Notes: generated from the letters alone by a model not told the origin. A DNA stretch of 64,000 nucleotides from Eutreptiella sp. 'Long Island Sound 2002' (GCA_964036045.1 OZ038378.1:189100001-189164000); one strand, 5' to 3'. Positions 33,854 through 63,393 are shown, counted from the first letter of the stretch. Numbers and translations: made by a program.

Positions 33854-34165
33854 CCGACACACGCCTTGTGGGAGGGCCTGATGACCTGTCAGGTCGTGTG
33901 GAGGTGCGGCACAATGGCGTATGGGGCACAGTCTGTGACGATGGCTGGGACGACTCGGATGCCTTTGTGGTGTGCCAGTCACTGGGGTACTCGGGCGGGA
34001 CAGCGCGTGAAGGAGGTGCGTTTGGCAAAGGGCGTGGGCCGATATGGCTGGCCAATGTGAACTGCGATGGTACGGAAAGGACTGTGACTGAGTGCCCACA
34101 CGGCGGCTGGGGCGGACACGACTGTGCGCACAAAGAAGATGCCGGAGTGGTTTGCAGTCCTGCAG
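33854..34165 (+). CDS. Exon: SRCR domain (type a), phase 1-1, 312 bp
   Basis: TTTTGTGCAG|CC..CCTGCAG|GT; DTRLVGG..GRVEVRHNGVWGTVCDDGW..VVCQSLG..IWLANVNC..C..C..EDAGVVC, six Cys (group A pattern). Confidence 0.92.
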
Positions 34166-34786
34166 GTGCTTGTGCTGTCCCCCCCTCCTTCTTTCGTCGG
34201 GCCATTGCTCTTTGAAGGATTTCGAGGAGGTGTAACGAAGTGTTGGTTGGGGATGCTGAGGAATGACGCGGTGCTGCAGCACATTTGCAGGGCAGTTACG
34301 GTCGCCTCTTTGTGTCACACTTTCACGGTCTTCATGGGCATATGCGAGTGTACGGCAAGACCGGCCCCACCCCTTCTCCTACAAGTAGCCTTCTACTGAC
34401 GTGATGTTCATCACCGGCGGGAGCATTTTAGATTAACCGGATGGTTTCTCTGATGCGCATTGCCCCCGTTTTCGTGGTTTCTCTTTTCTTTCCTTCTATT
34501 TCCATCACTGGCACGGGAGCCATGTGGTAAACAACGGTTCACTCCGAGCAGTGCCTCTTGGTTTGTGCCAGGGCGCAGGTGAGGGACCCACCGACGCCGC
34601 AGTGTGAGACTAGCGTGAGACTTTGGGGCTACGTTGCGGGCTGTGTTTACGGCAGCCCCTGTTTCCGGGTGAGAAGAGGGGGCCCAGAAAGTGGCCTCCG
34701 ATGTCCCCCACCCCCCCCTCCACGTGCATACCAGTGACAACAGGGGCACACGGGGCAGGGCCTCTCACATCGTTCCTGCAGAGCCA

Positions 34787-34872
34787 AGCCCCAGCCCCAG
34801 CCCCAGCCCGAGTCCAAGCCCAAGCCCCAGCCCCAGCCCCAGCCCCAGCCCCAGCCCCAGCCCCAGCCCAAG
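34787..34872 (+). repeat. (AGCCCC)n hexamer inside a dispersed repeat (related copies near 24550-24730 and 39428-39620)
   Basis: Direct reading; the flanks are similar between copies. Confidence 0.85.
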
Positions 34873-35677
34873 CTCAGGTCTTCTCCGAACACCCCCACAT
34901 TTACGACACATCTTTGATCCAAACCCAACTGCCGCTTTGTTGGGCGCCCTCTTTATGCCTCGTCCTCCCGCTGCACATGTCAAGCGGTTCCGGGGACTAT
35001 CACATCAGCCGGGGGGATCGTACGGAGCAGCCCGCGCACAAACGGGTCCACACACACGGTCCACGCACCCCCACATCCCCCGGGGCACAAGTTCTGCGTT
35101 CGTCCTCCCCCGGGCACGCGTTGGTTTGAGTGGCACACTGGACCCTCTACAACGCTGCCCCCGTGACATTGACCAGTTCACAAACACCACCGACGAGGTC
35201 CTTCCTACGTCACCCGCAGTACCCCCCGTGCACGCGTTGTAGCGAGGCTGTGCATTGGGCCTCGTGCGGTGCGCTGTTGTGCGCCATTGTACATGAGTCC
35301 CGGCGGCAATGCCCAGGTACTGTGACCAAAGCAGACCCCTGTTGTGCCCGGTACACAAGTGAATCTGGTCCGAGACCCGGTGGAAAGGGCTGCATGCAAA
35401 CGCTCTGCGGGCGCCGGAGTGGACGCCACGGGGGCCGTGCACTGCCGCGGTCGGCGGTGGGATCCGTATTCCGCTTGGACCCACAGAACTGCCCTTTGCC
35501 TCCCCCAGTCCCCTCCGCAGACGACCTCAACCCACAAAACTGGTCACACCAGAGACACGGGACAGCGGTTGTGGAACACGCCCCCGTCGCGTGCAAGTCC
35601 CTCGGGGCCCCTCCCACTGGGGGGTGCTCTACGGCCCCGCAGCCGGCGTTTGTCTCCGCGCGACCACATTTGTGCAG

Positions 35678-35983
35678 ACACGATCCGACTTGTGGGAGGA
35701 CCCAACGCATCGTCCGGTCGTGTGGAGGTGTGGCACAAGCGCGAATGGGGGACGGTATGCAACGACTCCTGGGATGACGCCGATGCCGCTGTGGTGTGCC
35801 GGATGTTGGGGTATTCCGGGGGCGTGCAAATGCACTCCAGGTTCACGACGGGCACCGGGAAAATCTGGTTGGACGAAGTGGAGTGCGAAGGCACCGAATC
35901 CGACCTGGCGCAATGCAAGCACGCCGGCTGGGGCGAACACAATTGTGATCATAACGAAGACGCCGCTGTGACTTGCACCGCAG
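35678..35983 (+). CDS. Exon: SRCR domain (type b), phase 1-1, 306 bp
   Basis: TTTGTGCAG|AC..ACCGCAG|GT; [37 protein letters not shown]. Confidence 0.92.
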
Positions 35984-37376
35984 GTCAGACTGCGACTGTG
36001 GCTTTGGGGAGGGCACGGGCAGAGCGCGAGGACGCAGGTCAGCCAGGCAGCTACTTCTGCATCGCGGTGCTCAGCGGGTCACTTCGACGCACAAAGAGTG
36101 ACATAGGCCGCGGCGCATTGTTCCGCCCTGCTCCTGCTTTTGCAGGTCTGATGGGGGCTGAGTGGGACGTGCAACAACCGAATCGGCATTTCTTAGCTCA
36201 GCCCTTCCACCCTCAGCAAAGGTGAAGCGCATGAGTCACAGCGGTTGACGCATGCGCCGCTGTCCCTCGGCTTGGGCCCCGTGCCTCCCACAACAGCCGT
36301 CACCTGCATGTGACTGCAGGTGCATGTCTCAGTGGCGAATCATCTCATTTCAGGGCGGGTTTGACGTCCGCAAATTTTTCGCATTTTCCCGCAATTTTCC
36401 GCAATCGCTGTTTGCTTGTCGACCTTGCATGCTTGAGTACACAGCCAACTTCTGGTGGCGATGTGGAGCGCTTTCTCACAGTGTGGCACTATTTCCAAGC
36501 GTCAGCACCAATGGGATGACAATGCCCAACTGCCTTCGGTTCACGCTCTCATTCCATGGTGATATTGAGGGTTGCCTCCTGTAGTTGTGATACCTGTGGA
36601 CCATGTTTGAAGAGACACGGGAACATTCTGAGCCACCTGTGCAGAAGTGTTGCTCCTCGGGGCTTCAGGAGGTTTGGTTACGGCACCGCAATGATTCCAC
36701 AGTTTTGCCGCAATGTTCGGCATTTTTTACGCAACACTCCCGTAAGTTCCCGGAATTTTTTGCAATTGGATTTGACGCTCCCTGATCGCATCACCCCCCC
36801 CCCCCCCCGGCCCCCTGCTCATTTTAGAGGCTCAACGTACCTGGCAAAGGCAAAGGAGGGTCATCGTTGTGTAGGCAGTTTGCTGCAGGATGCAGTACGT
36901 ATTGGCTTACATATTAAACTGAACTTTTTAATATTTTATATGGGACTGTAGCATATCATTTTGATATTTTTGAAGTTTATATTGAACAAAAGATTTGGTT
37001 CATCTTTGATTTTTTTGGGTACTAATTTTACTTGGTTTTAGTCTTTGATTTGGTTATTTTTATTTTTTAACTGATAGATTAGCTTTTGAGGTTAAAGTCT
37101 AAGTCGTATGCAAAATTGCAAAATTGCAGGTACAATTTATAAATAGAATCACTTTTTTCAAAATTTATTTAAGTTTTACTGAAAGATTTGAATTGGGTGA
37201 AATTCTAAAAGTCAATTTTTATGATTGGAAGTTTCGGCGTTTGTAGTGAGTTTTATTTGAGAAGAAGTTTAGGAATCTTTTATTTGATTAAGAACTTTTT
37301 GTGGTCAAGTTATTTAATTTTATTCTTGGGGAACTTTTTGATATGGCAATGGCGTCTGGTCGTCCTATTTGTGCAG

Positions 37377-37682
37377 ATATGATCCGACTTGTGGGAGGAC
37401 CCAATGCATCGTCGGGTCGTGTGGAGGTGTGGCACGAGCGCAAATGGGGGACGGTATGCGACGACTCCTGGGATGACGCCGATGCCGCTGTGGTGTGCCG
37501 GATGTTGGGGTATTCTGGGGGCGTGCAAATGCACTCCGGGTTTACGACGGGCGCCGGGAAAATCTGGTTGGACGAAGTGGAGTGCGAAGGCACTGAATCC
37601 GATCTGGCGCAATGCAAGCACGCCGGCTGGGGCGAACACAATTGTGATCACAACGAAGACGCCGCTGTGACTTGCACCGCAG
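37377..37682 (+). CDS. Exon: SRCR domain (type b), phase 1-1, 306 bp
   Basis: TTTGTGCAG|AT..ACCGCAG|GT; near-copy of the 35678 exon. Confidence 0.92.
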
Positions 37683-38954: not shown

Positions 38955-39272
38955 ATATGATCCGACTTGTGGGAGGACCCAATGCATCGTCGGGTCGTGT
39001 GGAGGTGTGGCATGAGGGCGAATGGGGGACGGTATGCGACGACTCCTGGGATGACGCCGATGCCGCTGTGGTGTGCCGGATGTTGGGGTATTCCGCGGCC
39101 GGAGGCAAAGGTGTTAGCAGTAAGCAGCATTTTGCAATCGGCACCGGGAGAATCTGGTTGGACGAAGTGGAGTGCGAAGGCACCGAATCCGACCTGGCGC
39201 AATGCAAGCACGCCGGCTGGGGCAAGCAAAATTGTGGGCACAGCGAAGACGCTGCTGTGATTTGCACCCCAG
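38955..39272 (+). CDS. Exon: SRCR domain (type b with a 4-aa longer loop), phase 1-1, 318 bp
   Basis: TTTGTGCAG|AT..CCCCAG|GT; intact SRCR motifs. Confidence 0.92.
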
Positions 39273-39960
39273 GTCATACTGCCGGCGAGTGTAGGGCTCA
39301 GAGACTGATTTGCACAGGACATGCCGTGACTATCGGAAGTCGCTTTTCCAGTCGTGTACGCACATACATAAGCGGGTCCACGGGTCAGGCCATGTCGCAT
39401 TCATTTTGTAGAAGCCGCGCCACTGTCAAGCCCCAGCCCCAGCCCCAGCCCCAGCCCCAGTCCAAGCTCAAGCCCCAGCCCAAGCCCAAGCGCAGGTCTT
39501 CTGCGATCACTGCCACCTTTGCGACACATCTCCGAACCACCGTGACCCCAACTGCCGCTTTGTGGGGCTGCCCTTTTAATGCCTCGTCCTCCCGTCGCCA
39601 ATTTCAAACAGTTCCGGGGACCATGGGACAGTCAGTTCATTGCTCAGGGCCTTCGTCCGTGGTCACTGCCTCCACTGTCTTTTGATGGAGGAAGCCAGGG
39701 TCGTACACTGAGAGACAGTACATAAGGCGTGCACCAAATCCGCACATCTCTGGGCAAATGGCCAGTCTCACAGCCTCGGGGGCGCGGCGTAGAACCCGAA
39801 GCCACATGCGGCGTACCTCGGACAAAGGCTGATGACTTGTGATTTTGTCAGCGTTTGAGGCAATCGGATTTGTGGTCTACGCCAAGGCACACTCCTGTCG
39901 CTTGTGCTGTGCTCCACACGGATGTTGGGGTGTGTATGCGTGTCTGCTTCTTTTGTGCAG

Positions 39961-40272
39961 CCGACACACGCCTTGTGGGAGGGCCTGATGACCTGTCAGG
40001 TCGTGTGGAGGTGCGGCACAATGGCGTATGGGGCACAGTCTGTGACGATGGCTGGGACGACCCGGATGCCTTTGTGGTGTGCCAGTCACTGGGGTACTCG
40101 GGCGGGACAGCGCGTGAAGGAGGTGCGTTTGGCAGAGGGCGTGGGCCGATATGGCTGGCCAATGTGAACTGCGATGGTACGGAAAGGACTGTGACTGAGT
40201 GCCCACACGGCGGCTGGGGCGGACACGACTGTTTACACAAAGAAGATGCCGGAGTAGTTTGCAGTCCTGCAG
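39961..40272 (+). CDS. Exon: SRCR domain (type a), phase 1-1, 312 bp
   Basis: Same splice context and translation as 33854 apart from a few substitutions. Confidence 0.92.
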
Positions 40273-42067
40273 GTGCTTGTGCTGTCCCCCCTCCTTCTTT
40301 CGTCGGGCCATTGCTCTTTGAAGGATTTCGAGGAGGTGTAACGAAGTGTTGGTTGGGGATGCTGAGGAATGACGCGGTGCTGCTGCACGTTTGCATTGCA
40401 ACTGGCGTTCCCTCCAAGTGTCACACTTTCACGGTCTTCATGGGCATATGCGAGTGTACGGCAAGACCGGCCCCACCCCCTCTCATTGAAGTAGCCTTCG
40501 GCTGCTGCTTTTTCACAGTCATCGGCGAGACCACGGCAGATCTGCAGAATGCATTTCGATTGAATGACCACTTGGGCGCCTTTCTCGACACGGAAACAGC
40601 CCTCAACGACTACGGGGGACGCCCACGACCACTTGAGGGCCCTGCCGCAATGTCACCATCAGAATCCGCATGTCACTGGCTCCGTGAGCCGCTCGAAAGC
40701 CTCCTGACGGCAGTTCGGAGCCCAAACCCGCCGAAAAACGCAGAACGCGCTCGACCCTCGGCCCCCTCCCCCAAACAGAAGCCGAGTCACGGGCGGCAGT
40801 GCGACCAGTCCCCAGACAGTCATGGGGTGACACGCCACAAGTGCCCACGGACTCCCCACAAGGACACAAGAACGAGGGAGGGTCGCTGCCGAGCTGCTCA
40901 GCAACCGGCCCCATGAGGACGCCCCGGGTGCCGAACGTGACTGGCAGCGGTATGGACGGGGGATCAGTCCCAGAACGACAGCAGAGAAGGACATGCGGCG
41001 GCATGTGGCATTATGACGAATCGGGAGGCAGTCGCATCGCACGCCCATGACCTCCTCCTCGCGGAAATGTGCGATCTGCCGACTGCACACATCATTTCGT
41101 GGGTGCATCCACCCGCGTGCAGAATCCTCATGCTGTTTGGGGGGGGTGTCGTCAGAGGCATTGAGAGGGTGTTTGGCGTCCGTCTGACTGCCACTTGGAA
41201 GTTTTGGGTTTCCAGTCGTGAGCCACAGCGCCTCGTTAAGGCAACTGTTTGGTGCACTTGGCATTTATTTGTGGTTTGATGGGGCGCTGTTGGAAGGCGA
41301 TGGGGATGGGTAATGTGGAATTCCTTTGGTTCAGACGAGTTCAGACGTGGGGCGGGTGGGTGGGGCAGGGTCCCGGTGGGCGGGACGAGTGGGCATGAGA
41401 ATGTAATCAGATGGTCATTTGATTGCTGTTTTTTTTTGCTCTTGTTGTTGTCTGCGCTCCCATTTGTGGGGGGGGGGTTATCCACTGAGTCAAACGGAAT
41501 TGATTGTCAGCAAAGGTGCGCACTGTGTGCGCCCTCATAGACCGTTTTGTGGTGGCCATACAGCGTTCTCTCGTGCCCACGCTGCGACGAAAGTCTGTAT
41601 GGTCCGGTACGTGCAATGACATGTTGTGTGCAAGGTAATCGAAGTATCTACTGGGCATTGGCACTGTGGTTTGCAGGCTAAGGATGTGGCAGTGGTTGGC
41701 ATTGATTGGTGAATGGTGGGTATCTTTTGATGTGGCAGTGCGGTGCGGTGCTGTGGATGTAGTAGTGGCCATGTGATATGGACGGACCACTGTTTGATGG
41801 TTTACGGATTGTTCAGAGGATATTGAACACTAGATTAGCCGTGGGGGCAGCAGAGGCTGCTGGGGATGCTGGTGGACACACAGCGCGGGCACATGCGGCC
41901 ACGTGCGGCCACGTGCGGCATACCTCGGACAAAGGCTGATGACTTGTGATTTTGTCAGCGTTTGAGGCAATCGGACTTGTGGTCTACGCCAAAGCACACT
42001 CCTGTCGCTTGTGCTGTGCTCCACACGGATGTTGGGGTGTGTATGTGTGTCTGCTTCTTTTGTGCAG

Positions 42068-42379
42068 CCGACACACGCCTTGTGGGAGGGCCTGATGACC
42101 TGTCAGGTCGTGTGGAGGTGCGGCACAATGGCGTATGGGGCACAGTCTGTGACGATGGCTGGGACGACCCGGATGCCTTTGTGGTGTGCCAGTCACTGGG
42201 GTACTCGGGCGGGACAGCGCGTGAAGGAGGTGCGTTTGGCAGAGGGCGTGGGCCGATATGGCTGGCCAATGTGAACTGCGACGGTACGGAAAGGACTGTG
42301 ACTGAGTGCCCACACGGCGGCTGGGGCGGACACGACTGTTTACACAAAGAAGATGCCGGAGTAGTTTGCAGTCCTGCAG
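42068..42379 (+). CDS. Exon: SRCR domain (type a), phase 1-1, 312 bp
   Basis: Translation matches the 39961 exon. Confidence 0.92.
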
Positions 42380-42904
42380 GTGCTTGTGCTGTCCCCCCTC
42401 CTTCTTTCGTCGGGCCATTGCTCTTTGAAGGATTTCGAGGAGGTGTAACGAAGTGTTGGTTGGGGATGCTGAGGAATGACGCGGTGCTGCTGCACATTTG
42501 CGTACCAGTCGCGATCGCCTCTTTGTGCCACACTTTCACGGTCTTCATGGGCATATGCGAGTGTACGGCAAGACCGGCCCCACCCCTTCTCCTACAAGTA
42601 GCCTTCCACTGACGTGATGTTCATCACCGGCGGGAGCATTATAGATTAACCGGATGGTTTCTCTGATGCGCATTGCCGCCGTTTTCCCTCGGCCATCACC
42701 ACTGGCGGCGGTTGTAGCATTCGTAGCTGTTGGCCTCTTTCACAGGTTTCATTCCTGGGTCTTTTGGTTTTTAGGTTCGTGGCGGGGCAGTCCGGCGCTT
42801 CCCCTCTGTGTCATCCCTGAAACCTCTTTGATGCCGTGGTGAAAGACACATACTGTCCGCTGAATGTAGAGAAGACGTCACGTGAGAAATTGTTCGTTCC
42901 TGGG

Positions 42905-44960: not shown

Positions 44961-44963
44961 AAG

Positions 44964-46254: not shown

Positions 46255-46380
46255 GCTGCTGAAAGTAGCATTTCATCGTCATGGTGGAAAGAATCCAGTT
46301 GGACAAAGTGGAGTCAGCAGGCACCGAATCCGATCTGGCAAAATGCAAGCATTCCCGCTGGGGCGAACACGATTGTCGTT
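46255..46380 (+). pseudogene. Decayed SRCR pseudo-exon
   Basis: RIQLDKVESAGTESDLAKCKHSRWGEHDC versus [29 protein letters not shown]; a stop follows. Confidence 0.8.
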
Positions 46381-46770
46381 GTGCTGCTGCTGCATAAAAA
46401 AGGGCGAGACGTTTACCAATGCACATGGGGATGACGGAATGTAGTTGGTAGACACTGTCTGCGAATGATAGACGTGGTCTGCAAATTGTAGTCACAGTCA
46501 GCTTGTTGTACCTTACGCCCCCCTTGTACTTCCCTCCCCCCTGAAAATCCCCCCCCTCGTTCGATAGGCCACAGAGTGCCTTGGCGTCTATCAGGCACCA
46601 AGCGCCGCATTGTTGAGGTGATGTTTGGGGTGTTCAGACGTCGCTTTGGTGCTACATGGGCACATTTGACCCCCTCCCTGCCCCCATACCACCAAGGACT
46701 GCGGGGGGAGGGGTGCCAGCATCATATTTGCAGTGCAGAACCGCCCCAATGCTGCTTTATTGTCACGCAG

Positions 46771-46932
46771 ATGTGGACTGCATCAGCAGCTGGAGCCCTT
46801 GGTCAACCTGCACTCAAACATGCGGTGGAGGAACGAGAACTCGTATACTTACCATTACCACACGTCCTTCCGGGGCTGGAACACGGTGCCCGGCAACCAA
46901 GGAAACCGAAACCTGCAATACTCAGCCCTGCA
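46771..46932 (+). CDS. Exon: thrombospondin type-1 (TSP1) repeat, phase 1-1, 162 bp
   Basis: CACGCAG|AT..CCCTGCA|GTATG; DCISSWSPWSTCTQTCGGGTRTR..C..ETCNTQPC. Confidence 0.93.
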
Positions 46933-47015
46933 GTATGACCCCCATGCATGTGCATTTCTGCCAGCATCATATTTGCAGTACAGAGCCGCCCCAATGCTGC
47001 GATATTGTCACGCAG

Positions 47016-48637: not shown

Positions 48638-51069
48638 GTATGTTCATGCCGGAGGTCCGAGAGGGGGAAGGGGAGACGCGTGGGGATTTTACCCTAGGCA
48701 TGTGGATCCCACCCACCGTCGGCCTACAGCCGCTGTCCGTATCACTTGGCACATCCACAACCGGTTGTTGGGTCGAAAATCCTAACTTGAGAACCCATAT
48801 TTCAAGCCAGCTCCTGCAGGCCTGGTTCCCACAGTCACCAAATTCCAACACTCACATGTCCTGTGCATCTTGCATGAATTGATTGGAAGTAGGAGGTCCC
48901 CCCCCTCCCCTCACACCCACCCCCTACGTCCTCCTGTTCAAAGTCGTCTGAAAGTCACTGTGTGTTGACTGCCAAAAGAGTATCAACCATGACGGCTTTT
49001 TGTGGCTACTGTCTAATGTTGCCTTCATTGTGATGCAACTGGGGTCCCCCCCTTCATTGTGGGGGACCTCATCATCTCATGGAGTGTGCGTACCCCTTAA
49101 TCTCCTTTCGTGGAACACAACTCACAAACCCAACAAACACCCTATACCCAACAATTCCAAACCCAAACAAGAAGCATCCAACAGGGGCCTTTGTGCGGAC
49201 AAAAGTATGGGCACCGCGGTCACCAGGGCTTGCCTTCGAGCAGGGGGAGGGAGGGGGAGGGGGGGAAGGGGGCAACCTCCTCCTTGCTACCCCAACAAAA
49301 TCAGTGTACAGCCTTGCTAGGGTGTGCTGTGATGTGCTGCGCAAGGCGTCGTTTGGCCAAGAATGAGTGAGTGGAAATTTTTTGAAGTGATGATATATGC
49401 GGCCTCCTGTGTTTAACAGAGATCATCTGTTTGAAAGAACTCGCGGAAGGAGTCAAGAGCTGGTCAGTTGCCTAGTTGTTGGCAACAGGGTTGGTGGTTA
49501 GTCGGAAAGAAACCCCCCTCGCCGATCCCACCTCAAAAGTTTTCCTGTCTACCTTTGACTCGAGGGAGCTCCCCCTCATATGGCGTGTTTCTTGGGCAGC
49601 AAGAAGGATTTTCCTACCGGTGATTTTAGCCCTGGAAACCAGGATGAAGTCCCAGCCTTTGCTAGTTGCAGGCAATTCTGTATTACCTGTCACGCCATGG
49701 TTGACCTGCCCCTCCCCACTGTCGAATAGCGTCATCGAGTATGGGAAGAGATATGTTCACTGCTCTTACGATCCTGGTAGTCTGCTTTCATGTGCATCGT
49801 GCTGGTCAATCTGTGGAAAAATGCTAGTTGTGCGCCACAGTGGACAGGGCTTCAGCTGGGCATGTCATGGTTGGTGTCGCTGCATTTGTTCATGGGGCGT
49901 AGCCGGGGGTGTCTTTTGCGAGTGGCACTGACGTTGTGGTCGGTGTTGTCTCCTGTTGCACCGGCAACCAAATCAGTCCCAGCATCCGAGTCCTGATGGG
50001 GCTGTGTCTGCCATCGATGACCGTGTCCCCCAGTTTGTGGTTCACTGGTATAGTGGCGAGAGGCCAATAGGCGCCGCCAACGGTAACCAAACCAGCAGCA
50101 TGGCCTCGTGCCAAACCCCTTCCGCCTCCGCATGCACGCATACACTTAGGACAATGGTGTCTCCCGCTCACTAGCGCTCTAGCGAGGTCCGGTCACTGTT
50201 GATACTCCGCTCGGCCTTGGAACCGGGCAGTCCTTTTGTTCAACCTCGTGGCTAGGGAGGGAGGGCCTGCTCCTGCATGAGGCCCTGTCCCATCCCCACC
50301 GCCCCCCCTTCCTCGGGACCTCCAGCAAATAGCCAGTCTCGGGAGGTACTCCGCGTCCTAACCAAGCCCCCCCCCCGTGACCGTGTTGGTAGTTATCCCG
50401 CTCTTCTGTGCCCTCACCCTTCCCTCCCAACCTCTAGAAGACTGTGTATCTGCCGTCGTCATTGGTGTTAGGCATCATCAAGGATGCAATTGGGTCTGTT
50501 GCAGATTGTGTGCCTCGGTGTTGGGGCTTGCTGCTGCGCACACTTTGCACTGTGGGGTGCTCCATGCAACAGCCTACGGCAGTGCTCTTGCACCGCCATA
50601 ACGAAGCTTTCCACTCCGTGCTCTCCTTGCGGCCCGCCAGCACGTTTGTCACCTACCACAGCCTACGGCACAACATCCCCATTTGTTTTGGCGACCGACT
50701 CGTTTGTGTCCATTTTTGTTCTGGTTGGGTGTCCGTGTGTGTTTGTTTTCAAGTTCCGTAGTTTCTCTTTCCGTCCGTTATTATTATTATTTTTTGTTAG
50801 TGTTGGTATTTCCAATGTTGAAGAGAGGGGGCTTTGTGAGGTTGCCAAATCCAACGGCGTTCAACGGCTGGGGTCAAAAATGAGCATACGTGTAGTGGTA
50901 TCTAGTTTCACTATTTGGTGCTTGGGTTGGGTCTCTACTCACGCCAAAGGCATTGTCCCAAGGCCTGCGTGACCTTACATCACTCGTGCGACTAGGTCCT
51001 AACCTTCGGTTGTCTAGTATCATAGATGCTTAGAGTGCTGACGATCCCCGAACCCCACTGAACCGCTAG

Positions 51070-52619: not shown

Positions 52620-52745
52620 GTAAGTAGCATTTTGTGGTCATGGCAGGAAGAACCTAGTTGGACAAAGGAGAGTCAGAAGGCATAGAATCCGATATGGCAA
52701 AATGCAAGCATTCCGGTTGGGGCAAACACGATTGTCGTCCTGCTG
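52620..52745 (+). pseudogene. Decayed SRCR pseudo-exon, paralog of 46255-46380
   Basis: [28 protein letters not shown]. Confidence 0.75.
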
Positions 52746-53857
52746 CTGCTACAAAAAAAAGGCCGAGACGTTTACCAATACACATGGGGATGACGGAATG
52801 TGGTTGGTAGACACTGTCTGCGAATGATAGACATGGTCTGCAAATTGTAGTCACAGTCAGCTTGTTGTACCTTACACCCCCCTTGTAATTCCCTCCCCAT
52901 TGCAACCCCCCCCCCCCCCCAACAGGGGAACGTCCATTTGACATTTCCTGTGGAAACGGTTGGTTGTACTGTGCTCTCCTGTACCTTCTCTGCAAGTGTC
53001 CTCTGTCAGAGTTGATTTCTCCTGTCATTCAGACACAAATGTATGCCACAGGCACTCGTGTTTTGGTACAGCAAGGGTGGCCCGCTGTTGGCAACTGACA
53101 TTGGTCCCTCACCCTCTGGACCTGAGTTCTTGCACACTCGACACCAGGGTACTGGGAACCAGGTTGTGGACCATACAGCAGCCAAGATCAGTCTGTGGAA
53201 CGGGCCCACGCACAGAAATAACATCATGTTTCAATGCGATCCACACTACCAGGGTTGTGCATGCACAGCTGCAGTTTTGAAGTGTTACTGTTTGTGGGTG
53301 CAACCCCCAACCCCCCGCGTGATGAAACCAAGGCCTGCGGCGCGACCACGGAGCAGCGAACAGCACAGGGGAGCACACGCTACCCGAGCCAATCATAACG
53401 GAGCACACACCACCCGCGGGACGCACGCCACCCGACAGCATGAAGGTGCGAAGGGTCAAACAGCATGCAACTACGCCCAGGACAGACTGGGATATGTGGA
53501 CCAGCAGAAGCAAGTGGCCAAAACCACCAACACCAAGCACACCAACACCAACAAGGAACCCCCTGGAGCCAGGATCTTCCTCCTCAAGGGGAAGGAGGGG
53601 ACATGGTGCGACGAACCCACTCCCACTCCCCCTACCCCGCCCCCATCGCTACCCCCTCCCCACAGCAACACGCTCCCCCGCCACCCAATGCCCCCCAGGA
53701 CAGAAAAAATATGGCGGGCCCAGAGGAAATTGGGCATGGGGAAAGGGACGAGCAAGGGGAGATAACAGGACAGGGCAGACCGCGCTGGCCGAAAACAGTG
53801 TGGAGCGCAAAAGGAGGAGAAGGAAAGGACAAAAGGGAAAGAATCATTGTGGTTGTT

Positions 53858-54170
53858 AAAAGCCCCTGTCAGGAAAATTATCCTGCAGATGCACACCCCA
53901 GCGCGCACAAGTCAGTGCTGGAGTCGGCAAACCCAGCATGGACTCGGAGTGTGCATCTGGATGCGCCTGGTCAGCCGCACGGGCAACAGCTTGTCTCCAG
54001 GACAGCTGACGCTGGAGTAGTCAAACAGGACAAGTCACCCAGGGCTCCGTTGACACAACCAAAACACGTTCGGACCCACAGAGGGTCAGAATGAGCAGTG
54101 GCAAGAGGCCAATAGGCACCGCCAAAGGCAAACAACCTAATACTGAGGCCTTGTGCCAGACCCCCTCCCC
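53858..54170 (+). repeat. Dispersed ~310-bp repeat (second copy 60332-60644; 3' parts at ~17182-17280, ~50050-50125, ~58037-58112)
   Basis: Shared core GTGGCRAGAGGCCAATAGGCRCCGCCAA. Confidence 0.8.
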
Positions 54171-54274
54171 CATGGGGGGGAACTGTTGCGACATTGGGGG
54201 GGTTCGGGGGGTTACAAGGGGGGCGTAAGGTAGGCAAGATGTTTTATTTTGTTCGATAGGCCACAGAGTGCCTT

Positions 54275-54431
54275 GGACTGCATCAGCAGCTGGAGCCCTT
54301 GGTCAACCTGCACTCAAACATGCGGTGGAGGCACGAGAACTCGTATACTTACCATTACCACACATCCCCCGGGGCTGGAACACGGTGCCCAGCAACCAAG
54401 GAAACCGAAACCTGCAATACTCAGCCCTGCA
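54275..54431 (+). pseudogene. Damaged TSP1 exon: acceptor deleted and 1-bp deletion
   Basis: GTGCCTT|GGACTGC junction removes ~0.2 kb including the acceptor; CATCCCCCGGGG versus CATCCTTCCGGGG. Confidence 0.8.
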
Positions 54432-54514
54432 GTATGAACCCCATGCATGTGCATTTCTGCCAGCATCATATTTGCAGTACAGAGCCGCCCCAATGCTGCG
54501 ATATTGTCACGCAG

Positions 54515-54676
54515 ATGTGGACTGCATCAGCAGCTGGAGCCCTTGGTCAACCTGCACTCAAACATGCGGTGGAGGCACGCGAACTCGTATACTTACCATT
54601 ACCACGCATCCTTCCGGGGCTGGAACACGGTGCCCAGCAACCAAGGAAACCGAAACCTGCAATACTCAGCCCTGCA
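54515..54676 (+). CDS. Exon: TSP1 repeat, phase 1-1
   Basis: Same splice sites and motif as 46771. Confidence 0.93.
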
Positions 54677-54759
54677 GTATGAACGCCATGCATGTGCATT
54701 TCTGCCAGCATCATATTTGCAGTACAGAACCGCCCCAATGCTGCGATATTGTCACGCAG

Positions 54760-54921
54760 ATGTGGACTGCATCAGCAGCTGGAGCCCTTGGTCAACCTGC
54801 ACTCAAACATGCAATGGAGGCACGAGAACTCGTATACTTACCATTACCACACGTCCTTCCGGGGCTGGAACACGGTGCCCAGCAACCAAGGAAACCGAAA
54901 CCTGCAATACTCAGCCCTGCA
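54760..54921 (+). CDS. Exon: TSP1 repeat, phase 1-1
   Basis: 245-bp period. Confidence 0.93.
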
Positions 54922-55004
54922 GTATGAACCCCATGCATGTGCATTTCTGCCAGCATCATATTTGCAGTACAGAGCCGCCCCAATGCTGCGATATTGTCAC
55001 GCAG

Positions 55005-55166
55005 ATGTGGACTGCATCAGCAGCTGGAGCCCTTGGTCAACCTGCACTCAAACATGCAGTGGAGGCACGCGAATCCGTATACTTACCATTACCACACATC
55101 CTTCCGGGGCTGGAACACGGTGCCCGGCAACCAAGGAAACCGAAACCTGCAATACTCAGCCCTGCA
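55005..55166 (+). CDS. Exon: TSP1 repeat, phase 1-1
   Basis: 245-bp period. Confidence 0.93.
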
Positions 55167-55545
55167 GTATGACCCCCATGCATGTGCATTTCTGCTCCGG
55201 GAAGCTCAACGCTCACCCAGTGTGCCGAACGAGGCACGGATTGTGCATGCGTCTTCATTTTGTTGTGGCCAAAGCCCTTCCCCCCCGTTTCGGGTATGGA
55301 AACAGACCCCCTGCCAAACCGTCAAAAGAAAGAAGCACGGCAGTACAGCAGACGACACCCAGGGTTTTTGAATATGTCTCCACTGACAAAGGAACGATGC
55401 AGACATTTTCTTGGAAGCTTGAAGGAAATTGGCATTGAGAAATGCAGAAATAAGTTTTTGCGGATGCGATGGCATCTGCGTCACAACGGGGCAAGGGAAA
55501 CAAAAGTCGTCGTGGCGCTGGAGACATAAGGGACATGCGATGTAG

Positions 55546-55620
55546 CGCAATGCAAGCACTCCGGCTGGGGCAAGCACGATTGTCGTCATAATGAAGATGC
55601 TGCTGTGCTTTGCACCACAG
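55546..55620 (+). CDS. Candidate 75-bp half-SRCR mini-exon, copy 2
   Basis: Same context as 47558-47632. Confidence 0.4.
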
Positions 55621-56312
55621 GTCTGTAGGGCATGCTCCTCGGTGGAAAAAAGTATTGTATCTAAAGAACAGCTCGGGGGGGCTAAACCGCATCGGTACCA
55701 CACTCAACGCTACATTGGTCATGACAGGGCCTCTCCCAATGTCCTGGAAACTCATCATTTCGTGTAACAGGCTGTGGAGGTCATGTCACATCAGTCCTAC
55801 ACACGCCTGTGGCGGGCCCGGGTTGGTGCCCGCTCTGAGGTTTCTTATGTCCCAATAACATCAGGGATTCAGCGTTGGGTCATATATCGCACTACGTCGA
55901 TCAAGTCCAAGATGGTGGTGGGGGGAAAGGTGGCAGCGATTACCCCATCTGTGGTTTGTAGATGCTAGCGGGTGTGTGTCTGTGTGTCTGTATGAATACA
56001 TTTTTTTGCAGTTTTTTTTTTTTGCATTTTTTTTTGCATGTTTTCGCCTGATGTGTAGTTGTCCAACAGCGGGGAAGGACTCTATTCTATGAGGTGTTCC
56101 ACATGCAGTAGAGGTTGAAATCACCCCGATCACACCATTTACACTCTCATTTGGTGGGGTTATCCGGGTACCATAGCCCAATGTATGAAATTGGATGTTG
56201 GGAGCTGGGGTGGGGCTCGGGGCGTGGTCCACCCGGGCAATGTGCATGGGGGAGTATGTGGAAGGGCCAAGAAGGCTCGAGCCCGGAGGCCCATTGTGTT
56301 CCATTTCTCCAG

Positions 56313-56624
56313 GTTGCTGCAACAGCGTGACCATTGCAGGGGCCTCAGATGTCCAATCCACGAGGATGGGCCAGTTCACGAAGGTTTTGGGGGTCACCAA
56401 GAACCACCGGCCAGTGTACAAGAATGCCCACGCCCAGTACCTTTACTATTGGATGGCGCCCCATTATCAGGCCTGGCACGTTGGGTCTGATTACAATTCA
56501 GTCAGCGCTGGTGTGAGAAGCAAACCAAACGAGAGAACAGTGTGCCCAGTGGACGCTACACCGCCTTGGCTTGAGTATTTCCGCAGTCAATGGCAAGACA
56601 GGAGTTCTATCACGGCAGATTGCG
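56313..56624 (+). CDS. Exon: unassigned ~104-aa module, copy 2
   Basis: Translation identical to 48326-48637. Confidence 0.8.
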
Positions 56625-59065
56625 GTATGTTCATGCCGGAGGTCCGAGAGGGGGAAGGGGAGACGCGTGGGGATTTTACCCTAGGCATGTGGATCCCACC
56701 CACCGTCGGCCTACAGCCGCTGTCCGTATCACTTGGCACATCCACAACCGGTTGTTGGGTCGAAAATCCTAACTTGAGAACCCATATTTCAAGCCAGCTC
56801 CTGCAGGCCTGGTTCCCACAGTCACCAAATTCCAACACTCACATGTCCTGTGCATCTTGCATGAATTGATTGGAAGTAGGAGGTCCCCCCCCTCCCCTCA
56901 CACCCACCCCCTACGTCCTCCTGTTCAAAGTCGTCTGAAAGTCACTGTGTGTTGACTGCCAAAAGAGTATCAACCATGACGGCTTTTTGTGGCTACTGTC
57001 TAATGTTGCCTTCATTGTGATGCAACTGGGGTCCCCCCCTTCATTGTGGGGGACCTCATCATCTTATGGAGTGTGCGTACCCCTTAATCTCCTTTCCTGG
57101 AACACAACTCACAAACCCAACAAACACCCTATACCCAACAATTCCAAACCCAAACAAGAAGCATCCAACAGGGGCCTTTGTGCGGACAAAAGTATGGGCA
57201 CCGCGGTCACCAGGGCTTGCCTTCGAGCAGGGGGAGGGAGGGGGAGGGGGGGAAGGGGGCAACCTCCTCCTTGCTACCCCAACAAAATCAGTGTACAGCC
57301 TTGCTAGGGTGTGCTGTGATGTGCTGCGCAAGGCGTCGTTTGGCCAAGAATGAGTGAGTGGAAATTTTTTGAAGTGATGATATATGCGGCCTCCTGTGTT
57401 TAACAGAGATCATCTGTTTGAAAGAACTCGCGGAAGGAGTCAAGAGCTGGTCAGTTGCCTAGTTGTTGGCAACAGGGTTGGTGGTTAGTCGGAAAGAAAC
57501 CCCCCTCGCCGATCCCACCTCAAAAGTTTTCCTGTCTACCTTTGACTCGAGGGAGCTCCCCCTCATATGGCGTGTTTCTTGGGCAGCAAGAAGGATTTTC
57601 CTACCGGTGATTTTAGCCCTGGAAACCAGGATGAAGTCCCAGCCTTTGCTAGTTGCAGGCAATTCTGTATTACCTGTCACGCCATGGTTGACCTGCCCCT
57701 CCCCACTGTCGAATAGCGTCATCGTGTGTGGGAAGAGATATGTTCACTGCTCTTACGATCCTGGTAGTCTGCTTTCATGTGCATCGTGCTGGTCAATCTG
57801 TGGAAAAATGCTAGTTGTGCGCCACAGTGGACAGGGCTTCAGCTGGGCATGTCATGGTTGGTGTCGCTGCATTTGTTCATGGGGCGTAGCCGGGGGTGTC
57901 TTTTGCGAGTGGCGCTGACGTTGTGGTCGGTGTTGTCTCCTGTTGCACCGGCAACCAAATCAGTCCCGGCATCCGAGTCCTGATGGGGCTGTGTCTGCCA
58001 TCGATGACCGTGTCCCCCAGTTTGTGGTTCACTGGTATAGTGGCGAGAGGCCAATAGGCGCCGCCAACGGTAACCAAACCAGCAGCATGGCCTCGTGCCA
58101 AACCCCTTCCGCCTCCGCATGCACGCATACACTCAGGACAATGGTGTCTCCCGCTCACTAGCGCTCTAGCGAGGTCCGGTCACTGTTGATACTCCGCTCG
58201 GCCTTGGAACCGGGCAGTCCTTTTGTTCAACCTCGTGGCTAGGGAGGGAGGGCCTGCTCCTGCATGAGGCCCTGTCCCATCCCCACCGCCCCCCCTTCCT
58301 CGGGACCTCCAGCAAATAGCCAGTTTCGGGAGGTACTCCGCGTCCTAACCAAGCCCCCCCCCCGTGACCGTGTTGGTAGTTATCCCGCTCTTCTGTGCCC
58401 TCACCCTTCCCTCCCAACCTCTAGAAGACTGTGTATCTGCCGTAGTCATTGGTGTTAGGCATCATCAAGGATGCAATTGGGTCTGTTGCAGATTGTGTGC
58501 CTCGGTGTTGGGGCTTGCTGCTGCGCACACTTTGCACTGTGGGGTGCTCCATGCAACAGCCTACGGCAGTGCTCTTGCACCGCCATAACGAAGCTTTCCA
58601 CTCCGTGCTCTCCTTGCGGCCCGCCAGCACGTTTGTCACCTACCACAGCCTACGGCACAACATCCCCATTTGTTTTGGCGACCGACTCGTTTGTGTCCAT
58701 TTTTGTTCTGGTTGGGTGTCCGTGTGTGTTTGTTTTCAAGTTCCGTAGTTTCTCTTTCCGTCCGTTTTTATTATTATTTTTTGTTAGTATTTGTATTTCC
58801 AATGCTGAAGAGAGGGGGCTTTGTGAGGTTGCCAAATCCAACGGCGTTCAACGGCTGGGGTCAAAAATGAGCATACGTGTAGTGGTATCTAGTTTCACTA
58901 TTTGGTGCTTGGGTTGGGTTGGATTGGGTTGGGTCTCTACTCACGCCAAAGGCATTGTCCCAAGGCCTGCGTGACCTTACATCACTCGTGCGACTAGGTC
59001 CTAACCTTCGGTTGTCTAGTATCATAGATGCTTAGAGTGCTGACGATCCCCGAACCCCACCGAAC

Positions 59066-59398
59066 CCCATGCATTACAAAGGATCCCCCATGCATTACAA
59101 AGGATCCCCCACGCATTACAAAGGATCCCCCATGCATTACAAAGGATCCCCCACGCATTACAAAGGATCCTCCACACATTACAAAGGTTCCCCCACGCAT
59201 TACAAAGGATCCTCACACATTACAAAGGATCACCCATGCATTACAAAGGATCCCCCACGCATTACACAAGGTCCCCCACGCATTACAAAGGATCCCATAC
59301 ACATTGCAAAGGATCCCCCATGCATTACAAAGGATCCCCCATGCACTACAAACAATCCCCCATGAGTTGCAAAGGATCCCCAATGCATTACAAAGGAT
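59066..59398 (+). repeat. 21-bp minisatellite GCATTACAAAGGATCCCCCAY, ~16 copies
   Basis: Direct reading. Confidence 0.95.
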
Positions 59399-60936
59399 CG
59401 CCAACGTCACTTTGACATTTCTTGTGGAAACGCTTGGTTGTACCGTGCTCTCCTGTACCTTCTCTGCAAGTGTCCTCTGTCAGAGTTGATTTCTCCTGTC
59501 ATTCAGACACAAATGTATGCCACAGGCACTCGTGTTTTGGTACAGCAAGGGTGGCCCGCTGTTGGCAACTGACATTGGTCCCTCACCCTCTGGACCTGAG
59601 TTCTTGCACATTCGACACCAGGGTACTGGGAACCAGGTTGTGGACCATACAGCAGCCAAGATCAGTCTGTGGAACGGGCCCACGCACAGAAATAACATCA
59701 TGTTTCAATGCGATTCACACTACCAGGGTTGTGCATGCACAGCTGCAGTTTTGAAGTGTTACTGTTTGTGGGTGCAACCCCCAACCCCCCGCGTGATGAA
59801 ACCAAGGCCTGCGGCGCGACCACGGAGCGGCGAACAGCACAGGGGAGCACACGCCACCCGAGCCAATCATAACGGAGCACACACCACCCGCGGGACGCAC
59901 GCCACCCGACAGCATGAAGGTGCGAAGGGTCAAACAGCATGCAACTACGCCCAGGACAGACTGGGATATGTGGACCAGCAGAAGCAAGTGGCCAAAACCA
60001 CCAACACCAAGCACACCAACACCAACAAGGAACCCCCTGGAGCCAGGATCTTCCTCCTCAAGGGGAAGGAGGGGACATGGTGCGACGAACCCACTCCCAC
60101 TCCCCCTACCCCGCCCCCATCGCTACCCCCTCCCCACAGCAACACGCTCCCCCGCCACCCAATGCCCCCCAGGACAGAAAAAATATGGCGGGCCCAGAGG
60201 AAATTGGGCATGGGGAAAGGGACGAGCAAGGGGAGATAACAGGACAGGGCAGACCGCGCTGGCCGAAAACAGTGTGGAGCGCAAAAGGAGGAGAAGGAAA
60301 GGACAAAAGGGAAAGAATCATTGTGGTTGTTAAAAGCCCCTGTCAGGAAAATTATCCTGCAGATGCACACCCCAGCGCGCACAAGTCAGTGCTGGAGTCG
60401 GCAAACCCAGCATGGACTCGGAGTGTGCATCTGGATGCGCCTGGTCAGCCGCACGGGCAACAGCTTGTCTCCAGGACAGCTGACGCTGGAGTAGTCAAAC
60501 AGGACAAGTCACCCAGGGCTCCGTTGACACAACCAAAACACGTTCGGACCCACAGAGGGTCAGAATGAGCAGTGGCAAGAGGCCAATAGGCACCGCCAAA
60601 GGCAAACAACCTAATACTGAGGCCTTGTGCCAGACCCCCTCCCCCATGGGGGGGAACTGTTGCGACATTGGGGGGGTTCGGGGGGTTACAAGGGGGGCGT
60701 AAGGTAGGCAAGATGTTTTATTTCGTTCAATAGGCCACAGAGTGCCTTGGCGTCTATCAGGCACCAAGCGCCGCATTGTTGAGGTGATGTTTGGGGTGTT
60801 CAGACGTCGCTTTGGTGCTACATGGGCACATTTGACCCCCTCCCTGCCCCCATACCACCAAGGACTGCGGGGGGAGGGGTGCCAGCATCATATTTGCAGT
60901 GCAGAACCGCCCCAATGCTGCTTTATTGTCACGCAG

Positions 60937-61098
60937 ATGTGGACTGCATCAGCAGCTGGAGCCCTTGGTCAACCTGCACTCAAACATGCAATGGAGGCAC
61001 GAGAACTCGTATACTTACCATTACCACACGTCCTTCCGGGGCTGGAACACGGTGCCCAGCAACCAAGGAAACCGAAACCTGCAATACTCAGCCCTGCA
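60937..61098 (+). CDS. Exon: TSP1 repeat, phase 1-1
   Basis: Same splice sites and motif. Confidence 0.93.
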
Positions 61099-61181
61099 GT
61101 ATGAACCCCATGCATGTGCATTTCTGCCAGCATCATATTTGCAGTGCAGAACCGCCCCAATGCTGTGATATTGTCACGCAG

Positions 61182-61343
61182 ATGTGGACTGCATCAGCAG
61201 CTGGAGCCCTTGGTCAACCTGCACTCAAACATGCAATGGAGGCACGCGAACTCGTATACTTACCATTACCACGCATCCTTCCGGGGCTGGAACACGGTGT
61301 CCGGCAACCAAGGAAACCGAAACCTGCAATACTCAGCCCTGCA
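61182..61343 (+). CDS. Exon: TSP1 repeat, phase 1-1
   Basis: 245-bp period. Confidence 0.93.
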
Positions 61344-61426
61344 GTATGACCCCCATGCATGTGCATTTCTGCCAGCATCATATTTGCAGTGCAGAACCAC
61401 CCCAATGCTGCGATATTGTCACGCAG

Positions 61427-61588
61427 ATGTGGACTGCATCAGCAGTTGGAGCCCTTGGTCAACCTGCACTCAAACGTGCGGTGGAGGCACGCGAATCCGT
61501 ATACTTACCATTACCACACATCCTTCCGGGGCTGGAACACGGTGTCCGGCAACCAAGGAAACCGAAACCTGCAATACTCAGCCCTGCA
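61427..61588 (+). CDS. Exon: TSP1 repeat, phase 1-1
   Basis: 245-bp period. Confidence 0.93.
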
Positions 61589-62518
61589 GTATGACCCCCA
61601 TGCATGTGCATTTCTGCTCCGGGAAGCTCAACGCTCACCCAGTGTGCCGAATGAGGCACGGATTGTGCATGCGTCTTCATTTTGTTGTGGCCAAAGCCCT
61701 TTCCCCCCGTTTCGGGTACGGAAACAGACCCCCTGCCAAACCGTCAAAAGAAAGAAGCACGGCAGTACAGCAGACGACACCCAGGGTTTTTGAATATGTC
61801 TCCACGTGACGAAGGAACGATGCAGACATTTTCTTGGAAGTTCGCAGGAAATTGGCATTGAGAAATGCAGAAATACGTTTTGCGGACGCGATGGCATCTG
61901 CGTCACAACGGGGCAAGGGAAACAAAAGTCGTCGTGGCGCTGGGGACACAAGGGACATCACCCATTTTTCCAAGCCAATGACCAATAGGGCACACGACAG
62001 CATTTTGTTGTGGGCTTTTGCTATTGTCCACTCTGTTCCCCACTTCCCCACATCACCGGCAGTCCCTCTTCTTCAAGCAGCGAATGGGTTGCACAATGGA
62101 GGAATGCGTGTGGAATCTGCGACAGGACTGCTGCTGCCCCGGAACTGCATTGTACAGCGGTGGTCATGTTTTTGTGCGTGTTTGTGTGACGGTGCCCTTT
62201 TGATTTTTGTGATCAGATCGTCTGTATGAGTGTGGGGCCGTGGGTGTGTGGCCTGTGCCTGGGATGTGTCTGACCGCAATCAAAGATGCCTCTGCCTGTT
62301 TTGACTTTTATTCATATACTCGCCATATTGGCGCATCAGGCGGGGGTGCCTTCCAGACTGCGGCCATGGAGATGTGCACTACGGATCATGAACAGAGGTC
62401 TGGGGTCGTCTGGCGAAGAGTTCCCCCCGCAGAGAAAACGCGTACTGTGGGACAGCAGGATTTGTGGGTTGAGGTTTGCTTTGCATGGGGACGGCGATAC
62501 GCTGTGTTTGTGCCGCAG

Positions 62519-62674
62519 GTGGGACTTTGTGGATGTGGGGGAACAATGCGAGTGGGCAATTGGGTGATGGGACAACTGTCTACAAGTTTAGCCCCGTGCA
62601 AGTGACAATCGCACGCTGCAGTACAATTTCTGCGATTGCTCTGGGCGGATATCATTCTGCCGCATTATGTGCCG
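62519..62674 (+). CDS. Exon: RCC1 repeat, phase 1-1, 156 bp
   Basis: GCCGCAG|GT..TGTGCCG|GTATG; GTLWMWGNNASGQLGDGT..SPVQV..ISAIALGGYHSAAL. Confidence 0.92.
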
Positions 62675-62939
62675 GTATGTGTGTGCCATGGAGGGTCTTC
62701 TGGTGCAGGTCTGTGCTGCCCCCCGACGTGCATTGATTAGATGGGGTGTTTGGGTGTGAGGCCGCAGGTCCGTTTTGCGCTGTGTCAATGGGAAGGGGAC
62801 GTCGGAGCGGATCACAAGGGTACATAGCGCATGATGTTTGCTTCTGAATCCGCCAAATACACGTATTGTGGGGCAGCAGGATTTATGGGTTGTGGTTTGT
62901 GTTTGCATTGGGCAGTGATATGCTGTGGTTGTGCCACAG

Positions 62940-63095
62940 ATGGGACTTTGTGGATGTGGGGGAACAATGCGCATGAGCAATTGGGTGATGGGACAACTGT
63001 CAACAAGAAGAGCCCTGTGCAAGTGACGATCGCACGCTGCAGTACGATTTCTGCGATTGCTCTGGGCGGATTCCATTCTGCCGCATTATGTGCCG
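62940..63095 (+). CDS. Exon: RCC1 repeat, phase 1-1, 156 bp
   Basis: GCCACAG|AT..TGTGCCG|GTATG; GTLWMWGNNAHEQLGDGT. Confidence 0.92.
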
Positions 63096-63237
63096 GTATG
63101 TGTGTGCCATGGAGGGTCTTCTGGTGCAGGTCTGTGCTGCCCCCGAATGCATCACCGTACGGCTTCTGGGGCAGCACGATGTATGGGTTGCGGTTTGGCT
63201 TGCATAGGGCCATTGACACGCTGTGGTTGTGCCACAG

Positions 63238-63393
63238 ATGGGACTTTGTGGATGTGGGGGAGGAATCAGGACGGGCAATTGGGTGATGGGACAACTGCCG
63301 CCAGAAAGAACCCTGTGCAAGTGACGATCGCACGCTGCAGCACGATTTCTGCGATTGCTCTGGGCAAGGCGCATTCTGCCGCATTATGTGCCG
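63238..63393 (+). CDS. Exon: RCC1 repeat, phase 1-1, 156 bp
   Basis: GCCACAG|AT..TGTGCCG|GTATG; GTLWMWGRNQDGQLGDGT. Confidence 0.92.

Follow-up and report, generated by a model that had tools for sequence, protein, structure and literature searches.

Is the exon architecture at positions 33854-63393 of a 64,000-nucleotide stretch of DNA from the unicellular euglenid Eutreptiella sp. 'Long Island Sound 2002' (GCA_964036045.1, OZ038378.1:189100001-189164000; hereafter the window) that of genuine coding exons, and was it built independently of animals? The window is C1:189100001-189164000 in our numbering of the assembly, C1 being a scaffold of 201 Mb and the assembly totaling 2.28 Gb. The locus consists of exons that each correspond to one SRCR domain, one TSP1 domain, one RCC1 blade, or one copy of a further domain, here called module X. 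Phase 1-1 exon shuffling is commonly cited as a hallmark of multicellularity in animals; this euglenid shows the same style with the same modules. The exons are probably genuine coding cassettes of one secreted mosaic protein, or of a few, binding ligands or surfaces.

Domain exons in the window

Domain units were located by tblastn with one representative per domain, their borders were then inspected, and homology searches were conducted exon by exon. The plus strand between 33854 and 63393 contains six full SRCR exons, eight full TSP1 exons and a broken one, two module X exons, three RCC1 exons, and two short 3' pieces of SRCR exons. tblastn against the whole window revealed no further SRCR, TSP1, X, or RCC1 matches in the rest of the window or on the opposite strand. 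The full exons are as follows.

33854-34165, plus strand: SRCR exon A1, 312 nt, phase 1-1, six cysteines, Pfam SRCR E-value 1.7e-31, AG/GT borders
35678-35983, plus strand: SRCR exon B1, 306 nt, phase 1-1, Pfam SRCR E-value 2.4e-32, AG/GT borders
37377-37682, plus strand: SRCR exon B2, 306 nt, phase 1-1, Pfam SRCR E-value 2.9e-33, AG/GT borders
38955-39272, plus strand: SRCR exon B3, 318 nt, phase 1-1, Pfam SRCR E-value 1.6e-32, AG/GT borders
39961-40272, plus strand: SRCR exon A2, 312 nt, phase 1-1, Pfam match, AG/GT borders, 98% identical to A1
42068-42379, plus strand: SRCR exon A3, 312 nt, phase 1-1, Pfam match, AG/GT borders
46771-47177, plus strand: TSP1 array 1, two exons of 162 nt (46771-46932, 47016-47177) with an 83-nt intron, giving a 245-nt exon-plus-intron unit, Pfam TSP1
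48326-48637, plus strand: module X exon 1, 312 nt, phase 1-1, four cysteines, no Pfam match, AG/GT borders
54515-55166, plus strand: TSP1 array 2, three exons of 162 nt (starts 54515, 54760, 55005) with 83-nt introns, from tblastn and borders
56313-56624, plus strand: module X exon 2, 312 nt, identical to X exon 1, AG/GT borders
60937-61588, plus strand: TSP1 array 3, three exons of 162 nt (starts 60937, 61182, 61427) with 83-nt introns, from tblastn and borders
62519-62674, 62940-63095, and 63238-63393, plus strand: RCC1 exons 1 to 3, 156 nt each, Pfam RCC1, AG/GT borders

A first-pass annotation, made from the sequence alone, had listed 19 intact domain exons of four types with these coordinates, with lengths in multiples of 3, GT-AG borders, and phase 1; tblastn and border inspection recovered all of them exactly. 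Every one of the 19 is directly preceded by AG and directly followed by GT. All are in phase 1-1, the first two nucleotides completing a codon and the last one opening the next, and all lengths are divisible by 3 (SRCR 306, 312, or 318 nt; TSP1 162; X 312; RCC1 156), with no internal stop in any exon. Judged by sequence, all 19, together with the paralogous copies surveyed, would be class 1-1 modules, i.e., modules with a phase-1 intron on both sides. Since the exons end in G or A and start with CC, AC, AT, GT, or GG, the junction codon is never a stop. The annotation's statement that any subset of the exons can be joined in frame thus holds for these stop-free phase 1-1 exons.

The Pfam matches are significant for three of the domain types, with E-values of 1e-30 to 1e-33 for SRCR, 1e-10 to 1e-14 for TSP1, and 1e-12 for RCC1. 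Against the SRCR profile (PF00530), the six exons score 105-115 bits (cut-off 26.1) and cover profile positions 1-100. The TSP1 exons (PF00090/PF19028) score 54.9 bits with TSP1_spondin and 40.8 bits with TSP_1; they contain the motif WSPWSTC and six cysteines each. SRCR domains have a framework of six cysteines in group A and eight in group B. Each full SRCR exon of the locus has six, the group-A number, yet the domain is contained in a single exon, as in group B.

The 19 exons derive from about five cassette types (SRCR-A, SRCR-B, TSP1, X, and RCC1) through tandem and segmental duplication at 96-100% identity. Given this recent duplication of cassettes, the locus provides few independent observations of phase 1-1, and the bare count of 19 overstates the evidence. 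Equal and symmetric phase is a precondition for the in-frame multiplication of cassettes.

A candidate 5' exon at 31393-31483, upstream of 33854, combines an ATG, a hydrophobic stretch, and a phase-1 donor; it was rejected as unconvincing and is not conserved at paralogous loci.

Conservation and selection

The genome contains at least 114 SRCR matches, and 20 loci were taken for border comparison. Every exon-type SRCR copy surveyed, from several lineages at 50-93% identity, has a phase-1 AG and GT within a few codons of the predicted borders. Three classes of SRCR depart from this arrangement: an intronless array on C5, a multi-copy type without GT-AG at the predicted borders, and a few exon-type copies that lack the acceptor dinucleotide. 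The SRCR-A copies at the sampled loci are 88% identical within the exon and 96% identical across intron positions +1 to +10, against 63% across positions -10 to -1 and 32-47% in the deeper flanks. Because conservation of SRCR-A is confined to the exon and its splice sites, the borders are more than a chance occurrence.

A paralogous locus on the same scaffold consists of two parts. Three SRCR-B exons and one SRCR-A exon are located at C1:1195035-1198406, and C1:1263437-1274188 contains, in this order, SRCR-A, three TSP1 exons, X, a TSP1-like unit, X, and a second TSP1-like unit. Comparison with this locus gives a dS of 0.13-0.30 and a dN/dS of 0.30-0.37 for SRCR, TSP1, and X, and no cysteine differs. 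Among the SRCR, TSP1, and X copies within the locus, dN/dS ranges from 0.2 to 0.64 and is below 1 in all pairs. For the predicted coding sequences, these values indicate purifying selection. Since only exons and splice sites are conserved and dN/dS is about 0.3, the exons look like real coding exons. The same values bear on the earlier proposal that the locus is rapidly diversifying: with dN/dS below 1, nothing supports fast amino-acid diversification, and only copy number is dynamic.

Further support for the predicted borders comes from an intronless paralogue of 1998 aa (P0003, region C6:2553225-2554202). It reads '...NTQPCSCCSS...', which is the TSP1-to-X junction expected from splicing at the locus.

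Several other SRCR and TSP1 copies were encountered in the genome. Near-identical SRCR copies without GT-AG borders are located at C16:21543784, C16:21560498, C25:22804698, C19:17075443, C19:17310887, and C8:44930856, some of them with TSP1 matches within tens of kb (C8:44938904, C25:22848814); these copies may be carried by a mobile element or may have nonconventional introns. SRCR domains also occur inside intronless open frames of 3569-5993 codons at C5:26534078-26537317 (with a repeat every 393 nt), C12:47774513, and C15:7868489, which are giant intronless relatives of the cassette genes. At C25:15999311-16073167, about 30 TSP1 matches on one strand, spaced about 2.5 kb apart, form a very large TSP1 cassette array.

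The RCC1 propeller and its partners

The RCC1 exons continue beyond the window, with the same borders, at C1:189164713-874 (162 nt), 189170028-183, 189170989-171144, and 189174784-939. The three exons in the window and the four within 11.5 kb downstream amount to seven, the number of a full seven-bladed propeller (PF00415/PF25390). Similar combinations are found elsewhere in the genome. On C27, two SRCR-A exons precede a set of seven phase 1-1 RCC1 exons on the same strand, each 156 nt long; C13 repeats this order on the minus strand, with SRCR exons ahead of RCC1 exons. In an intronless 870-aa ORF on C8, a hydrophobic, signal-peptide-like N-terminus is followed by two TSP1 domains, a cysteine-rich stretch, and seven RCC1 repeats. 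The RCC1 propeller thus appears to be a regular partner of secreted-type SRCR and TSP1 modules in this genome, an architecture that we found described nowhere.

In the RCC1 introns (e.g., 62675-62725 and 62435-62518), about 50 nt after the donor and about 85 nt before the acceptor are conserved among all seven units, and these flanks are partly kept in the C27 and C14 copies. They may reflect the duplication unit only, or an intronic signal.

Module X

Module X is about 100 residues long and has no match to a Pfam family. A scan of 1.84 billion representative proteins returned 300 relatives, 75 of them at an E-value of 1e-10 or better and the best at 1e-84, often in tandem. Protist proteins contain 2-10 copies. 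The partners of module X include TSP1 and PAN domains, astacin-CUB in the annelid Owenia, a Sushi/EGF giant in Branchiostoma that resembles SVEP1, ricin-B, and GH3-PA14. A transcript-derived protein combines a signal peptide with ten X copies, a threonine-rich (mucin) stalk, and a transmembrane helix; a signal peptide and/or a membrane anchor is also present in the X relative designated P0002.

An AlphaFold2 model calculated from an alignment of 103 sequences is of very high confidence, with a pLDDT of 97.7. Foldseek found no solved structural relative of the model at an E-value of 0.001 or better, and the profile search against the PDB returned nothing better than 0.1. An insert of DNMT5 was considered as a relative and rejected, its best VIA-align Z score of 7.1 being inside the noise range quoted for the tool. 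In the ESM Atlas, the fold occurs in haptophyte, diatom, ciliate, cnidarian, and other proteins, and is always unnamed. Module X is a widespread extracellular domain without a Pfam family, and its predicted fold has no clear solved match. We flag it here as a common extracellular domain that has neither a name nor a solved structure.

Origin of the DNA

The architecture would be ordinary if the stretch were animal DNA, present as a contaminant or through a very recent transfer. The exons are built in exactly the animal style, and the best named matches to the SRCR exons are bird DMBT1/CD163 fragments. However, the identity to these bird domains is 52-58%, which is about the identity between the SRCR subfamilies of the host itself, and the window is located inside a 201-Mb scaffold. 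Nuclear RbcS polyprotein arrays are a hallmark of Euglena. The genome carries such arrays: an open frame of 1693 aa on C11 comprises at least ten units, and C14 has a further array. Many contigs carry SRCR, X, TSP1, and RCC1 cassettes of this type, and the introns of the locus contain the very high-copy repeat of the host genome; animal contamination is excluded on these two grounds. An animal source for the stretch is thus highly improbable, and the inference of a protist host made in the first-pass annotation is borne out: the DNA is not metazoan.

Apart from the C11 and C14 arrays, more than 80 dispersed places (e.g., C14:48925419-48925559 and C8:60932216-60932356) contain 81-codon frames that match only the C-terminal half of RbcS (positions 51-97). 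These half-frames resemble a repeat family that arose from RbcS mRNA.

Comparison with animals and other protists

The description of the architecture as animal-style is accurate. In the Owenia gene with an astacin-CUB-X7 arrangement, each of the four X modules inspected fills a single exon of 101-110 codons bounded by phase 1 at either end, as at the locus. In a bird DMBT1-like locus, the SRCR domain is one 324-nt exon in phase 1-1. The SRCR mosaic genes of animals (DMBT1/gp340, CD163, and the sea-urchin SRCR families) share with the locus one SRCR per exon, phase-1 introns just outside the domain, and tandem exon duplication. The locus differs from them in several respects: its domains have six cysteines and not the eight of group B, its introns are displaced by 2-6 codons, TSP1, module X, and an RCC1 propeller take the place of CUB/ZP or SID spacers as partners, and the host is a euglenozoan. 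The class 1-1 mobile modules of animals described by Patthy, including the TSP1 repeats of thrombospondin and properdin, are likewise symmetric phase-1 exons that each encode a disulphide-rich extracellular module and occur in any order; in contrast to these, the locus is located outside the Metazoa and RCC1 blades also serve as cassettes.

The excess of phase 1-1 modules in metazoans and the alignment of exons with domains across eukaryotes are already known (PMC6547436). Nonconventional introns make up 71.8% of the total in Euglena agilis (PMC12501133); the 19 exons at the locus have conventional GT-AG borders throughout. The brown-algal ROCO/LRR genes are a non-animal example of exon cassettes, with one repeat per exon, in-frame shuffling, and rapid change in copy number (PMC11378527). 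Those genes encode candidate intracellular immune receptors of the LRR type, whereas the cassettes of the locus are cysteine-rich domains of the secreted type that are common to animals. Apicomplexan and chromerid adhesins (the TRAP/MIC families and the LCCL/CCp proteins) are extracellular protist mosaics that use TSP1 and SRCR for adhesion. We know of no RCC1 propeller or module X in these adhesins. The chromerid genomes are described in PMC4501334. Our literature search found no paper on SRCR or TSP1 genes of Euglena, or on the shuffling of such exons there.

The first-pass annotation had also described the system as built independently of animals, which is doubtful. Animals encode these modules as single phase 1-1 exons too, and the SRCR domains are as close to those of vertebrates as given above; independent building is not the simplest reading. 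Shared ancestry, or the transfer of ready-made cassettes, is at least as likely. It is conceivable, although we hold it to be rather unlikely, that the phase 1-1 toolkit is not an animal invention: SRCR, TSP1, and X would be the same cassettes in the euglenozoan and in animals, through descent from an early eukaryote or through transfer of intron-bearing cassettes, the host would have added the secreted RCC1 propeller, and X would be a new and widespread extracellular fold. Should transcripts confirm the exons, a tractable alga open to genome editing would allow tests of whether the cassettes are ancient, transferred, or convergent, and of the functions that SRCR, TSP1, module X, and secreted RCC1 propellers serve in a free-living cell. 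The interest of the locus would be greater if cDNA showed the joins and a phylogeny showed the cassettes to be common to animals.

Duplication history

Self-comparison of the locus by BLAST revealed that it consists of recent duplicates. The SRCR-A units at 33723-34473, 39801-40499, and 41937-42686 are 95.5-97% alike. The segment 46714-51064 matches 54703-59066 at 98.9%, and 46557-47548 is copied at 60723-61958 with 96-98% identity, the latter block containing TSP1 array 3. The tandem exon-plus-intron units measure 245 nt for TSP1 and about 300-420 nt for RCC1. Incomplete exons and inserts at the locus are as follows.

46292-46379, with a second copy at 52646-52739, plus strand: relic of the middle of an SRCR-B exon, blastn 77-82% to the SRCR-B exons of the paralogous locus
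47543-47632, plus strand: truncated 3' end of an SRCR-B exon, 90 nt, AG/GT borders and phase 1-1 kept, tblastn to SRCR residues 77-101, homologous to SRCR-B of the paralogue
55531-55620, plus strand: second copy of the truncated SRCR 3' piece, 90 nt, from tblastn and borders
54273-54430, plus strand: broken TSP1 exon, acceptor and first bases lost at a duplication/deletion junction, with a frameshift; tblastn match split over two frames
52929-54276, with a second copy at 59403-60750 (99.2% in self-comparison), no strand assigned: 1.35-kb insert ending in a very high-copy repeat, from self-comparison and contig depth
59065-59406, no strand assigned: tandem repeat with a 21-nt period within an intron, seen as a self-comparison ladder with offsets in multiples of 21

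The 90-nt piece at 47543-47632 is possibly a mini-exon or a relic. A very high-copy short element occupies 60200-60800 (equivalent to 53726-54326), where contig depth in DNA runs is 1e4-5e5, and also occurs at 49890-50170, 57877-58160, and about 17200; it is thus located in introns of the locus and elsewhere in the window.

RNA evidence

In the search of RNA runs, a single run contained the locus, an estuary metatranscriptome that shares 0.09 of the words; its contigs were compared over 58001-64000. The remaining runs with the locus cover exons and introns evenly and are best read as DNA. One RNA contig of 341 nt matches 60936-61057 without mismatch from contig position 220 onward, exactly at the TSP1 acceptor 60936/60937; the 219 nt before that point belong elsewhere. 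The match extends one base upstream of the exon, to a G that would fit a preceding exon ending in G, such as X or SRCR. As a sign of splicing, this breakpoint is suggestive only. A search of the protein collection with the X and SRCR exons returned genomic ORF calls and foreign SRCRs, and no transcript-derived fragment of either.

Gene model and alternative explanations

In the model that we favor, this nuclear locus would encode a large secreted mosaic protein, or a small number of adjacent ones, composed of SRCR domains, TSP1 repeats, module X, and a seven-bladed RCC1 propeller, with each domain or blade on one conventional GT-AG exon in phase 1 at both ends. The arrays would have grown through tandem duplication of exon-plus-intron units by unequal crossing-over, and further, recent segmental duplications of 1-8 kb would have left truncated exons and transposon inserts. 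The exons would be spliced as predicted, with SRCR, TSP1, X, and RCC1 in the same transcript, and the protein would be extracellular and bind ligands or surfaces. A role in extracellular binding or adhesion, as suggested in the first-pass annotation, is plausible: X is found in proteins with signal peptides or transmembrane segments and beside lectin, astacin-CUB, and TSP1 domains, and the C8 gene combines a signal peptide with two TSP1 and seven RCC1 units.

A number of observations weigh against this model. The window yielded neither a first exon nor a signal peptide, transmembrane exon, or 3' end. No spliced joint was found, as no contig of the one weak RNA run skips a predicted intron over 58001-64000. 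The metatranscriptome also contains 151-208-nt pieces in predicted introns and over the donor at 61588; therefore, unspliced RNA or carried-over DNA is present. Among the runs available to the search, none listed as an RNA match carries the name of the organism. The broken and truncated exons and the transposon inserts reflect ongoing decay. With respect to the RCC1 exons as part of one gene, no RCC1 match is found at the paralogous locus within 50 kb after its last X/TSP1 exon, and seven closely related RCC1 exons on C14 are preceded by 13 kb free of SRCR, TSP1, and X. Moreover, TSP1 array 3 is a very recent duplicate that abuts the RCC1 exons, so their adjacency may be accidental.

Alternatively, the exons may be divided among several adjacent genes. 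For example, an SRCR gene could span 33.8-42.4 kb, one or two TSP1/X genes could follow at 46.7-56.6 kb, and a gene for TSP1 and RCC1, or for RCC1 only, could begin near 60.9-62.5 kb; every such gene would acquire its own spliced-leader 5' end. We regard this as a serious possibility, if somewhat short of an even one. Between the blocks lie gaps of 4.3-5.9 kb that contain transposon inserts; at the paralogous locus, which lacks RCC1, 65 kb separate the SRCR block from the SRCR-TSP1-X block; the C14 exons stand by themselves; and an RNA contig at 61578-61728 is unspliced over the last TSP1 donor. However, phase 1-1 exons without start codons cannot open a coding sequence, the separate first exons that such genes need were not found, and other loci and the intronless gene join SRCR or TSP1 with seven RCC1 units. 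The signs of decay, i.e., the broken TSP1 exon, four truncated SRCR pieces, and the transposon inserts, could also mean that the array is an unexpressed pseudogene region swollen by segmental duplication and transposons, with exons that are intact only as young copies. Copies within the locus, at 96-100% identity, are too young for selection to show, and the one weak RNA run gives no clear expression. This explanation is unlikely in view of the comparison with the older paralogous locus, with its dS of 0.13-0.30, its low dN/dS, and its conserved cysteines; the sharp drop in conservation outside exons and splice sites, the absence of stops from all 19 full exons, and the RNA contig breakpoint at a predicted acceptor also argue against it.

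The first-pass annotation favored a fast-diversifying recognition-receptor system with many isoforms from combinatorial exon choice, invented independently of animals. Every exon subset is indeed in frame, and copy number is clearly dynamic. In contrast, there is no excess of amino-acid changes in any SRCR, TSP1, or X pair, exons and introns of the tandem units are equally similar, the one weak RNA run provides no evidence of isoforms, and the same cassettes exist in the same phase in animals. We consider such a system quite improbable; combinatorial splicing of the exons is a formal possibility only.

Other repeats in the region

At 8713-12900 of the window, a satellite with an 85-nt period comprises about 47 or more copies at 96-99% identity; its minus strand contains a frame of up to 970 codons without a stop. 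Long open frames of the LTR-retrotransposon type (capsid/protease, reverse transcriptase, and integrase-like) are located at C1:189183889-189190274, 9 kb downstream of the last RCC1 exon.

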